NCBI GenBank assembly: GCA_024704765.1 | Contig: JAKMXF010000066.1 | Coordinates: 434,001-498,000 of the forward strand | Source: Oopsacas minuta | Lineage: Eukaryota > Animalia > Porifera | Length of the DNA stretch: 64,000 nucleotides | Direction of reading: 5' to 3' | In this document: positions 60,190 to 64,000 of the stretch, one piece after another | Numbering within the stretch: position 1 is the first letter of the stretch | Layout of the letters: each line of letters begins with the position of its first letter | The notes under the pieces: generated by a model | What the model was told of the DNA's origin: nothing | The model's input: the letters and a program-made list of their open reading frames with translations, nothing else | The model's database searches: none | Made by a program: the position numbers and the translations under genes

Positions 60190-60359
60190 AAGCTTTATAA
60201 TTGTTATATTTCTGTAATTAGATTAATGTAATTCGCTTTATTTCCTGCTTTGTTCATCGCTAAGATTGTTTCTGATTAAATAGTCATTTAAACAAAACGA
60301 ATGAAACTTTCAGAATGTTTTATATATTTTTAACACACTAGACCCTGATTAATACAAAC

Positions 60360-60436
60360 ACAGTTAATACGAACTCCAGATAAGCGAACACATTTTGACC
60401 GTCCGTTCGAATTTGTATTTACGAGGTTCCACTGTA
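60360..60436 (+). mobile_element. MITE family C copy between SMG7 and GLMP
   Basis: ...gaccgtccgttcgaatttgtatttacgaggttccactgta, inverse-related to the 26145 copy. Confidence 0.55.
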
Positions 60437-60511
60437 TTTGGATAAAATCGCATGTCTACTTTAATATTTACATTTCTATTTACTTAAATGTCTAGATTTA
60501 TAGTTTATGAG

Positions 60512-61705
60512 ATGCGAGATAATCTATTACTGATCCTTACTTCTCTTATCTTCACGACTGCTCTATCTACACAAGGCCCTAAGTTTAAATGTGAGCTAAA
60601 TTATAAACACAGTACTGAAGGAGTTTACACTGTATACGACATAACTAATGGAATTATGCATGTAGCGAGTTTCGTTGGAGATCCTACCTTTATGATATAT
60701 CGCACAAACAAATCTGATTCTCTGAAAATTCATTGCAACGAAAGTAAGCAAATAACAAATGTAGCTATCAGTAGTTATGAGTTGTTGTATGGATTTGTAA
60801 TTAGGAATTTAATAGAGTTCAAAGTTCAAGGTTCAGGTGTAAATTTTAACCGGCAAAAGTTCGACAACAATACAGTTAACCTGTTCAACACAACATCTCT
60901 ATCCAATTTGAAGTATAACATAACTAGTTTAGGTAAGAATTGTGACGAGACTGGGAAAATAACAGTATCTCTACAGCAAAAGAATATTAGTTCAAATTAC
61001 ACACAAATGAATATTCTATTTAATTTCCAAGCTTACTCGAGTGAAGGGAGATTGATGAATCAACCTCGTTACGCGTACAGGGGTAATAATTCAGTGATAG
61101 GTATTGTTATAAAGGATTATCAATACCATCTAACTAATACATCAAATCCTGCTAGCAGGCTAGCCCTAGAACTTGATTTCATACGGAATGATAAATCTCA
61201 GTTATTCTACTCCTCAGTATCTAATATAGATGATGAATACACACCAGCTGTATTCCTACAGAACACACTGTCACTACGACAAGGGGGCTATTACTACTGG
61301 AAGCCTATTGCGTATGTAGCTCAAGATAGAACAGTAGAGACTTCTATGATGGCTACTTACCTGAATGGTACTTATACTAACTCTACTGTTAAATTGAATA
61401 CTACAGGTTTTTACCATTATCTACAGGGTAATATTAATGCTAGTCTTGAGAGAGCATTTATGCTGTTTGGAACTGATGGCGATTCAACACTAAATGCTGA
61501 TTATGTCTACTTCCGTATGGAGCTAGGACTAGGTACTCCACCCACTGATAGTATTTCTTTACCTCTGATTATTGCTATTGGGGTTGGATTTGGTCTCCCT
61601 GTGCTTGGACTACTGTTGGGGGTTGTTGGTATGTGTTTCTTTATGGCTTACAAATGCTGTTTCAGGAAAAGCACCAGAAATGCACGCTATGTAATGATAA
61701 ATTAG
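60512..61705 (+). CDS. GLMP: Glycosylated lysosomal membrane protein (NCU-G1/C1orf85), single exon; the ORF opens at 60488 but the second ATG gives a clean signal peptide
   Basis: Signal peptide; many N-X-S/T sequons; IDDEYTPAVF and YYWKPIAY; single C-terminal TM helix; lysosomal sorting tail YVMIN-stop. Confidence 0.85.
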   Translation: MRDNLLLILTSLIFTTALSTQGPKFKCELNYKHSTEGVYTVYDITNGIMHVASFVGDPTFMIYRTNKSDSLKIHCNESKQITNVAISSYELLYGFVIRNLIEFKVQGSGVNFNRQKFDNNTVNLFNTTSLSNLKYNITSLGKNCDETGKITVSLQQKNISSNYTQMNILFNFQAYSSEGRLMNQPRYAYRGNNSVIGIVIKDYQYHLTNTSNPASRLALELDFIRNDKSQLFYSSVSNIDDEYTPAVFLQNTLSLRQGGYYYWKPIAYVAQDRTVETSMMATYLNGTYTNSTVKLNTTGFYHYLQGNINASLERAFMLFGTDGDSTLNADYVYFRMELGLGTPPTDSISLPLIIAIGVGFGLPVLGLLLGVVGMCFFMAYKCCFRKSTRNARYVMIN

Positions 61706-62153
61706 ATATGATGTACATGTTTGTAAGTAACCGCAGTTTGCTTCTTTAACTTTTGAACTTTATTTTAGCGAAACTTTCCCTTCTTGAAACGTATACATAC
61801 TTGTTACAAAATTTATGTACATTCGTATTTGAGCTATTACTATTATTACATTATAATCTATGTACACTTTATTAGATTAGAGATTTAATCATACAGCATG
61901 ATCAGTCGATGCCCATCAATTCCTTTGCTGTTAGAGTGTTAAATGAATTATTGTACCATCATTATAGGTCGCTCTATGTGTGGCCGTTAAGGCCCCAGAA
62001 TGTATAGTTATGGTGGGATGTATTGTCTCGAGACACAATCTTTCGGGTAGAGAGCATTCTGACCTATATTTTCGCAATTTGAGCTTATAAACATCTTAAG
62101 CTATATAATTTTCGGATCTAATCTTTATATATTATAGGTTATTGCTATTTGAA

Positions 62154-64000
62154 ATGTCTAGAATATTCCTGTGTGGCTCTCGTTCAGTAGGAAAGACAAC
62201 TCTATGTAAAGATTGGTGTGAATGGAATAAAGAATATGTTCATATTAATGGAAATGACGTCACTAGTGAAGTAATGGATGCAAATAATATTAGTCGTGAT
62301 GATATTATTAATTCTTTGAATACAGAAGCTAAAGAGTTATATTACAATCTACAGAAGTATCTTTTTATTGAGCAAAACAAGAGAGAAGAATTGCTAAGTG
62401 ATCGATTGTTCATATCTGATAGCGGACCAGATCCTCTTATTTATACTCACAAAGAAAGTAAGGATATGTCTTATAAATTGTATAAGCATGAAGATGTTAC
62501 GAATTGCTTCAATCTCTACCGCAAGAGTTTAATAGTTGTAGTAGCTCCTTTAGAAGATGACAGAGAACATAATTCTTATACAAAGGTATTGAGACATGTA
62601 TTACAAGAGTGTGGTGTACCTTATATGTACCTGAGAGAGAGGGTTAGATCAAAAAGATTAGAAATACTTAAGATAGCAGCTATTAATGGGTGTGTCCTTA
62701 TGCCATTGGATCAGTTAAAAGAACAGCAGTGTCTTGCTTACTACATGGACATAGGAACTGTGAAAAATCGCATATTTTGCTCTCCAATGTCTCTGCAAGA
62801 TAATACAGCCTATATTCGTAAATTCATAATATATCCATATGAAATACAATTATCTATTCAATCAATGGACAGTACTAATCGTATGCTAGAGAGATATGGT
62901 ATAGGTAATTTTGTATTACTTGAATTCCACTGGAAAGTTAGTGATAATGACATTAAAGATATTCTGGGTATAGGACTATATGTAGATGGTGATGAATACC
63001 AGTTTATAGGTTGTAGCTCAGAGGAATTGAGGAGTAGGACTTGTTACCTTATGAAGGGAGATACTAATTACATTGATGCTGTATTGAGTGAGTGTGGAGA
63101 TTTTTCTGGGGTAAACACGGTTGCTGAGAGGTTGAATAGGATAGGATACCTATTCTCAAAAGGTATAAATACAGGTGTAGCTATTAGCAATGACGAGTTT
63201 GAGGTTATTGAAGATGTCTCAAATGCTGGAAGGATATTCACTGATGGTTGTGGATTAATTGGATTGAATTTAGCTAAGAAATTGGCTATAGGTTCTAATG
63301 TGGGTATAAACTCTCCAGATGATAATATTCCAGGTGTTTTTCAGATCAGATTCCAAGGGTACCAATGTGTTGTTATGAAGGCCCCAAAAGAAAACCAAGA
63401 TTCTTTTCAGTTAAGAAATTCTATGTTGAAATATAATACTGGAACAAAGCCTTTTCCACATATCTGGATCTGCAACCATTCTCGTCCTAATTCATACGGC
63501 AATCTAAACAAACAGTTTATTATGTTACTATCTGGACGAGGGATAAGTGACAAAGTTTTCCTTACAAAACAAGATAGTTATTTCACTGCATTAGAGAATA
63601 TGTTAATCGATCCTAAATTCGCTATTAAACTTCTTAACTGGAAAAACTACACAGAACTAGCCGAAACAGTAGCTGCCTGTCCTTCTACCGAGGATATGCA
63701 ACAGAACAAAGAAATACAAAACAAACTCAAATACCTCAAAAATACACTTGTAGAGAGAATTGACGAATTAGAAATTCCAGTTATTAACTCGCGATATATG
63801 TTTGGTGTCTGTGATCCTAATCAGCTGTTAGAATACGGAGAATGTTTCGTTAGATACACATTGAATGATGAACTAAAAACACTACAGGCAGGAACTTCTG
63901 TGATTGTTGGGAAGAATCCTTGTTATCATCTCGAAGATATTAGAGTTTTAATCACAGTAGATTATCCTGAATTGAATCATTTAGTTGATTGTATTGTATT
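62154..64000 (+). CDS. Cellular RNA-dependent RNA polymerase (QDE-1/RDR family) with an N-terminal P-loop NTPase (AAA_28/NMP-kinase-like) domain; 3'-truncated by the window end
   Basis: Read manually: 615 uninterrupted codons from ATG 62154. N-terminal IFLCGSRSVGKTTL (Walker A) and ISDSGPDPLIY. RdRP motifs STNRMLERY, FIGCSS..LR.RTC, RIGYLFS, FTDGCGLI, FQIRFQGY, RNSMLKY, LNKQFIMLLS, SRYMFGVCDP..LLEYGECF, KNPCY..DIR, LNHLVDCIV. Confidence 0.92.
   Translation, partial: MSRIFLCGSRSVGKTTLCKDWCEWNKEYVHINGNDVTSEVMDANNISRDDIINSLNTEAKELYYNLQKYLFIEQNKREELLSDRLFISDSGPDPLIYTHKESKDMSYKLYKHEDVTNCFNLYRKSLIVVVAPLEDDREHNSYTKVLRHVLQECGVPYMYLRERVRSKRLEILKIAAINGCVLMPLDQLKEQQCLAYYMDIGTVKNRIFCSPMSLQDNTAYIRKFIIYPYEIQLSIQSMDSTNRMLERYGIGNFVLLEFHWKVSDNDIKDILGIGLYVDGDEYQFIGCSSEELRSRTCYLMKGDTNYIDAVLSECGDFSGVNTVAERLNRIGYLFSKGINTGVAISNDEFEVIEDVSNAGRIFTDGCGLIGLNLAKKLAIGSNVGINSPDDNIPGVFQIRFQGYQCVVMKAPKENQDSFQLRNSMLKYNTGTKPFPHIWICNHSRPNSYGNLNKQFIMLLSGRGISDKVFLTKQDSYFTALENMLIDPKFAIKLLNWKNYTELAETVAACPSTEDMQQNKEIQNKLKYLKNTLVERIDELEIPVINSRYMFGVCDPNQLLEYGECFVRYTLNDELKTLQAGTSVIVGKNPCYHLEDIRVLITVDYPELNHLVDCIV

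Follow-up and report, generated by a model that had tools for sequence, protein, structure and literature searches.

Does the open reading frame that runs off the end of a 64,000-nucleotide stretch of the Oopsacas minuta genome (positions 434,001 to 498,000 of contig JAKMXF010000066.1, assembly GCA_024704765.1; hereafter the window) encode a working cellular RNA-dependent RNA polymerase (RdRP)? The original prediction, made from the letters of the window, had read the frame, which starts at position 62154 on the forward strand, as a kinase-like P-loop domain fused to such a polymerase, with the catalytic DxDGD expected 20-30 codons past the window end and a UPF1-like helicase perhaps further on. 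The fusion was borne out by a Pfam match to PF05183 and by the NadR-type fold of the N-terminal domain, and the helicase was found in its expected place, with both AAA_11 and AAA_12 present beyond the window. A working polymerase was not what we found, as the homologous catalytic residues read SLGED. The gene product, termed here P0004, is probably best understood as a conserved pseudo-polymerase fused to a helicase.

Within the window, frame 1 was open over 615 of 615 codons from 62154 (+) up to 64000. The start codon was placed at 62154-62156 (+), the first ATG after an in-frame TAA at 62106-62108, and relatives start in the same manner with MSRI[IF]LCG. An exhaustive homologue search recovered the whole protein of 2,305 aa, whose residues 1-615 are 100% identical to the window frame. 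Its coding sequence (CDS) lies without interruption at GCA_024704765.1 JAKMXF010000066.1:496154-503071 as a single, intronless exon, of which the window holds the 5' 27%. The claim of an intronless frame of at least 615 codons therefore held over the full 2,305 codons, and the frame had been missing from the list of open reading frames (ORFs) only because it extends beyond the window end. Reading past 64000, as had been proposed, reached the homologous catalytic position and the C-terminal domains with no stop or frameshift. From N- to C-terminus, P0004 consists of a NadR-like P-loop kinase fold, an RdRP domain, a helical region with a TLDc fold, a disordered repeat linker and a Upf1-like superfamily 1 (SF1) helicase.

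The RdRP domain begins at 62832 and runs to 64000 (+) as the first 389 of ~490 residues (aa 227-615), continuing past the window. PF05183 matched this part with 239 bits (E 1.4e-70, profile positions 2-418 of 582; gathering score, GA, 23.8) and the full P0004 over aa 227-716 with 311 bits (E 2.2e-92), and the best solved relative of the window protein by sequence was Arabidopsis RDR2 (7eu0, E 1.9e-24). The established active site of these enzymes is the DbDGD motif (Pinzon 2019, PMC6396948; Marker 2010, PMC2896523), although mutation has proved only the third Asp essential, in QDE-1, RDR6 and Rdp1 (PMC2896523). This triad of the second barrel was absent from P0004. At the homologous position, aa 632-636, located 17-21 codons or 47-61 nt beyond 64000, P0004 carries SLGED where ~45 aligned relatives carry DLDGD, and the flanking YFVCWD is retained. 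Two of the three Asp of DxDGD are gone; the third stays, with Glu635 adjacent to it. A further change was located inside the window, where codon 404 (63363-63365, +) is CAA, encoding Gln, in the family-invariant QIRxxGYKG motif that carries Lys in ~45 relatives, and the neighbouring residue of the invariant YKG is also altered, to Cys405 (G405C).

The three positional orthologues from sister species, P0005, P0153 and P0154, read HYGGD, HLDRD and HSDGD at the catalytic position. Asp1 is gone in 4/4 decayed orthologues and Asp2 in 2/4, and the motif is different in every one. The free variation of once-invariant catalytic residues among these orthologues marks the site as probably out of use. 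More broadly, the decayed copies retain 74-84% of family-invariant columns in the RdRP and 86-90% in the helicase, as against 96-100% in other members. We infer from these residues that P0004 has lost polymerase activity.

The N-terminal domain (aa 1-200; 62154-62753, +) was identified by Pfam, profile comparison, AlphaFold2 (AF2) modelling and VIA as a degenerate P-loop kinase fold resembling AAA_28 and the ribosylnicotinamide kinase (RNK) domain of NadR. Pfam AAA_28 (PF13521) reached 21.7 bits over aa 3-163, under its gathering score of 27, and the family is not counted as present in P0004; relatives score 38-78 bits. The AF2 model, built from a 44-sequence alignment, had a pLDDT of 88.7. 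Its closest structure was the NadR ribosylnicotinamide-kinase domain 8x7f (VIA Z 16.9, root-mean-square deviation 2.3 A, 160 residues); further NadR entries and thymidylate kinases came next in the VIA ranking, at Z 14-15, and the family profile matched NadR (8x7f, 1lw7, 6gye) at E 4e-8 to 4e-6. Both of the P-loop motifs that had been quoted were located, GSRSVGKT at aa 8-15 and ISDSGPDPLIY at aa 87-97. By alignment, the former (62175-62198, +) is an intact Walker A of the form GxxxxGKT, for which the family consensus is GASSVGKT. In the latter, ISDSGPDP (aa 87-94; 62412-62435, +) has Ser90 in place of the Arg of ISDRGPDP found in most members, and this Arg-to-Ser change at the DRG position is common to 4/4 decayed orthologues. 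At 62547-62567 (+), PLEDDRE stands for the family PLxxxTDDGxRLVxxxxEQ; the deleted DDGxR segment aligns with the NadR lid, W-x-DDG-L-R, and the deletion is again found in 4/4 decayed orthologues. P0004 has a P-loop kinase fold with Walker A, and lacks the DDGxR lid and the DRG arginine.

Downstream of the RdRP, the model of aa 717-1135, comprising the helical region and the TLDc fold, had a pLDDT of 79.8 and resembled NCOA7 (7obp, E 5e-5), OXR2 (4acj, TMt 0.70) and Atlas TLD clusters. The TLDc family of Pfam (PF07534) was not matched, nor was any Pfam family at E up to 5 for aa 717-1290, and neither aa 717-1890 nor the N-terminal domain yielded anything with Pfam and NCBIfam; the TLDc was recognised by fold search only. 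The linker that follows (aa ~1130-1530) is poorly conserved and carries DNA-level tandem repeats with periods of 129 and 267 bp. These repeats, at L001 6875-7563 of our extracted locus (aa ~1292-1521, beyond the window), form about seven copies of a ~43-46-aa unit with LIELSDTEIT-like motifs, which resemble SUMO-interaction motifs in that acidic and Ser/Thr residues come after a hydrophobic core. The repeat linker has no aligned counterpart in other family members, and the three orthologues align over part of it only.

The C-terminal helicase (aa ~1890-2263) is of the Upf1-like SF1 (SF1B) type, with AAA_12 at 162 bits and AAA_11 at 127 bits, both above GA, and with Nam7/Upf1 (E ~1e-54) and ZNFX1 (2e-30) as matches among solved structures. 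Motif I reads GLPGTGKT, motif II DDATQ where the family has DEATQ, and motif VI TRGRR; on sequence grounds, the motif I would be acceptable and the E-to-D change (E2035D) appears conservative. The motifs are intact in 3/4 orthologues (P0005, P0153 and P0154), which have GPPGTGKT or GPSGTGKT, DEATQ and TRAKR. Scanning P0004 against Pfam, with matches admitted up to E 0.01, gave no UPF1 zinc-binding (CH) domain. An O. minuta paralogue of 2,061 aa with the AAA_28-RdRP-helicase arrangement, P0162, bears the NCBI name 'Regulator of nonsense transcripts 1'; as there is no CH zinc-knuckle, that name has been carried over from the helicase alone and hides the RdRP.

When and where the decay arose could be read from the locus. 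The gene order EST1, GLMP, P0004-type gene, a ~330-aa gene on the minus strand and RING is identical in four assemblies. P0004 together with P0005, P0153 and P0154 forms a clade (100 SH-aLRT) inside an 18-member glass-sponge clade, with a stem branch of 0.35 and an Oopsacas end branch of 0.39. The sister of this decayed clade, P0156, has all motifs intact (DLDGD, DRGPD, the lid and DEATQ) and lies in a fifth assembly at the same GLMP-flanked locus with homologous neighbours; GLMP distances put its species outside the other four. Because an intact sister occupies the same locus, the decay arose within glass sponges at this locus. The locus therefore once coded an intact enzyme, and decay took place on the stem leading to Oopsacas and the three sister species.

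Selection on the decayed gene was analysed by the ratio of nonsynonymous to synonymous substitution rates (dN/dS, omega), calculated by the Nei-Gojobori method among three close species, with dS of 0.35-0.65 for the decayed copy, and compared with an intact paralogue (P0160, P0161 and P0163) in the same three assemblies. Overall, dN/dS was 0.27-0.30 in the decayed copy and 0.13-0.15 in the intact paralogue. The corresponding values were 0.24-0.29 and 0.07-0.10 for the RdRP, 0.24-0.28 and 0.13-0.15 for the TLDc region, and 0.18-0.25 and 0.06-0.11 for the helicase, while for the P-loop domain they were 0.12-0.13 and 0.14-0.26. Neighbouring GLMP gave 0.17-0.21. The decayed polymerase and helicase are thus 2.5-4 times less constrained than those of the intact paralogue, yet far from neutral, and the P-loop domain, despite having lost its lid, is constrained as tightly as before or more so. 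None of the four decayed copies is interrupted, and their ORFs span 2,082-2,305 codons. With 5% of point changes in the P0004 CDS creating a stop, the frame would have stayed open through 2.5% neutral divergence with a probability of ~2e-4. The decayed gene has evolved under purifying selection.

The reading that we favour, and consider probable, is that P0004 is a conserved pseudo-polymerase in which the RdRP and TLDc parts form a scaffold, the P-loop does not transfer phosphate and the helicase supplies the motor, alongside live paralogues. With two of the three Asp lost, and Lys404 as well in Oopsacas, the polymerase would no longer bind the catalytic metal. The RdRP-shaped body and the TLDc domain could instead bind RNA or a partner non-catalytically, the P-loop domain would bind nucleotide and the helicase would be the sole remaining motor. 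It is also probable that P0004 acts alongside the several intact RdRP-fusion paralogues encoded in its genome, or regulates them, and a role as scaffold or regulator is suggested by analogy. A more specific version of this, which we advance tentatively and hold to be rather less probable than its negation, is that glass sponges turned one RdRP-fusion locus into a dead but selected protein that regulates or targets the live fusions, either as a heterodimer or as a helicase-driven RNA clamp.

Several observations weigh against this reading, most of them from the Oopsacas lineage itself. In a related organism (run X5, ~95% identical), two DNA contigs span the ORF without indels, and the DNA runs over the locus show even depth across genes and spacers. 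In codons 1-197, the comparison with run X5 gave 21 nonsynonymous and 8 synonymous changes (29 of 30 differences listed), an omega of ~0.64, which rejects the 0.12 of the P-loop domain (p 1.5e-5) and does not reject 1 (p 0.2). Oopsacas has also incurred extra losses, namely K404Q, G405C, the helicase motif II change of DE to DD, and GLPGTGKT. At codon 404, run X5 reads AAA (Lys; 63363 C>A with respect to the Oopsacas CAA), and as the relative retains Lys404, K404Q is recent. Constraint in the Oopsacas lineage appears weak, and in view of this and of the extra losses the Oopsacas copy may be on its way out. On the side of chemistry, the retained third Asp with Glu635 next to it leaves room for residual or altered activity.

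On a rival reading, the Oopsacas gene has recently become a pseudogene or is on the way to losing its function; the open frame would be a remnant, and the protein would be in use in the sister lineage only. Besides the omega of ~0.64, this would account for the many family-invariant sites at which Oopsacas alone is changed (12 in the RdRP, and 12 in the helicase with E2035D among them), the long end branch of 0.39 and the lineage-specific expansion of tandem repeats in the linker. However, the 6,915 nt carry no stop or frameshift, where ~8.6 stops would be expected at 2.5% neutral divergence, and the two contigs of the relative show no indels over the ORF. The Oopsacas-versus-sister dN ratio is also about that of the neighbouring GLMP, and the omega is based on just 29 changes in one domain. 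We thus regard a pseudogene as unlikely, though it deserves more weight than the opposite view, in which P0004 would be an active cellular RdRP equipped with an accessory kinase and would amplify small RNAs through a non-canonical metal site. For the latter speak the strong PF05183 match, the retention of 84% of family-invariant RdRP columns, the purifying selection on the RdRP in sister species and the third Asp and adjacent Glu that remain; but a site that has lost Asp1 in every orthologue and Asp2 in half of them, with a different motif in each, together with the loss of Lys404 of YKG in Oopsacas, the deletion of the kinase lid and an RdRP dN/dS 3-4 times that of the intact paralogue, makes it very improbable. 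For a gene belonging to a transposon, provirus or other mobile element with its own RdRP speak the long intronless ORF and a short interspersed repeat (62008-62080) upstream of the ATG. The P0004 gene, however, is single copy and sits between the host genes GLMP and RING at a locus whose synteny holds in five assemblies, its RdRP is of the cellular two-barrel type rather than the viral palm type, and no element genes were found among the genes called in the flanks; a mobile-element origin was rejected on synteny and is given next to no credence.

Other members of the family showed irregularities of their own. P0008, a separate glass-sponge paralogue (L005 3001-9042, assembly ERZ20067936) with an open frame of 2,013 codons, has decayed independently and reads DLAGD, GYPGSGKT, DDATL and TRAQL. 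The intact paralogue P0006 (L006 3001-9314) was called as two ORFs, one of 1,507 aa followed by a 613-aa helicase with a 52-nt overlap, and this split between the TLDc/linker and the helicase points to a frameshift, a short intron or a mistake in the assembly. At the P0001 locus (ENA ERZ25068966), three same-strand ORFs of 951 aa (AAA_28 and RdRP), 560 aa and 651 aa (helicase) are separated by gaps of 7 and 81 nt, and probably represent a single gene that short introns or frameshifts have split.

The region upstream of P0004 was also inspected. The gene directly upstream, at 60488-61705, is GLMP/NCU-G1. The 5' leader, as read from the in-frame TAA to the start codon, spans 62106-62153 (+), and within it a pyrimidine/AT-rich run ending in AG (ttatattatAG, 62127-62137), ~17 nt before the ATG, looks like a putative 3' splice or trans-splice acceptor. 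Two short interspersed repeats were noted. One of ~90 bp (60349-60438) closely precedes the start codon of GLMP (60488) and has 18-39 other matching contigs per DNA run, with a summed depth 10-20 times that of the flanks. The second, at 62008-62080, lies ~75-145 nt upstream of the P0004 ATG and contains the palindrome TGTCTCGAGACA; its depth is 2-4 times that of the flanks, several other contigs are ~80-85% identical to it, and its core (62015-62040) occurs once only in the window.

The fusion had been thought distinctive for an early-branching animal, and here the wider search led to a different picture. At least 20 clusters at 50% identity align from query residue 1-4, with lengths of 1,700-2,400 aa. 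Proteins of Dysidea avara, Mya arenaria and Symsagittifera roscoffensis combine AAA_28 (above threshold) with RdRP, AAA_11 and AAA_12, and the same four Pfam domains are found in the diplonemid Rhynchopus euleeides and the diatom Amphora coffeiformis. A protein of Ephydatia muelleri, placed by alignment rather than by Pfam scan, aligns from the P-loop through the RdRP and bears the family motifs. Judged by domain content, the four-domain design is widespread, occurring in demosponges and other sponges, a bivalve, an acoel, a diplonemid and a diatom. No description of an AAA_28-RdRP-TLDc-helicase design was found in the literature searched, and neither RdRP nor RNA interference is mentioned in the paper on the O. 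minuta genome. The RdRP-fusion family is a multi-enzyme, unstudied one that is found across eukaryotes. To our knowledge, cellular RdRPs have no established role beyond small-RNA amplification, and no function is known for them in most animals. The present locus, where polymerase chemistry appears to be dispensable while a 230-kDa protein has long been retained, suggests that the RdRP body serves some non-catalytic purpose. With live and dead orthologues at one syntenic locus, plus live paralogues, it offers a comparative system for the role of each module, and should P0004 prove to be a dead regulator of the live fusions, the live orthologue in another glass sponge would be a natural control. 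For surveys, it cautions that counting PF05183 matches overstates RdRP capacity, and that the label 'Regulator of nonsense transcripts 1' misnames such proteins.

The nearest known relatives of P0004 are the other members of the unnamed AAA_28-RdRP-TLDc-helicase family, among them O. minuta P0162, a Dysidea avara protein, Ephydatia muelleri KAL5489393, Mya arenaria XP_052769817 and Symsagittifera roscoffensis XP_063723451. P0004 is collinear with this family from residue 1 to the helicase C-terminus, in the same domain order, and nests in its glass-sponge clade, and its membership is supported by both collinearity and the tree. It differs from the family in the loss of DLDGD and of the kinase lid, and in its ~400-residue lineage-specific repeat linker. 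With the NadR RNK domain (8x7f, 1lw7, 6gye) it shares a fold likeness of Z 15-17, and the Walker A and DDGxR lid are common to NadR and the fusion family; unlike NadR, P0004 has no lid and no nicotinamide mononucleotide (NMN) adenylyltransferase or helix-turn-helix part.

RdRP and SF1-helicase partnerships are known from the S. pombe RNA-directed RNA polymerase complex (RDRC), in which Rdp1 works with Hrr1, and from C. elegans, where RdRPs are associated with ZNFX-1. In both, an RdRP is paired with a helicase of the Upf1/ZNFX1 class, a pairing that P0004 holds in one chain. In contrast to these partnerships, P0004 is a covalent fusion with additional kinase-like and TLDc domains, and its polymerase appears dead. 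The silencing polymerases QDE-1 (Neurospora), RDR2 and RDR6 (Arabidopsis) and Rdp1 (S. pombe) have the PF05183 two-barrel domain in common with P0004, which, in contrast to them, lacks DbDGD and is fused to three other domains.

Closer in kind are cases in which homologues with a degenerate catalytic motif have been retained. Rdr3 of Paramecium tetraurelia has such a motif and is nevertheless needed for transgene-induced silencing (Marker 2010, PMC2896523), and in Branchiostoma there are RdRP genes that lack an intact active site (Pinzon 2019, PMC6396948), one of which, BL02069, combines the RdRP with AAA_12. These belong to other lineages and have other architectures. With P0004, in contrast, live and dead forms can be compared directly, as its locus has a live orthologue and its species has live paralogues.

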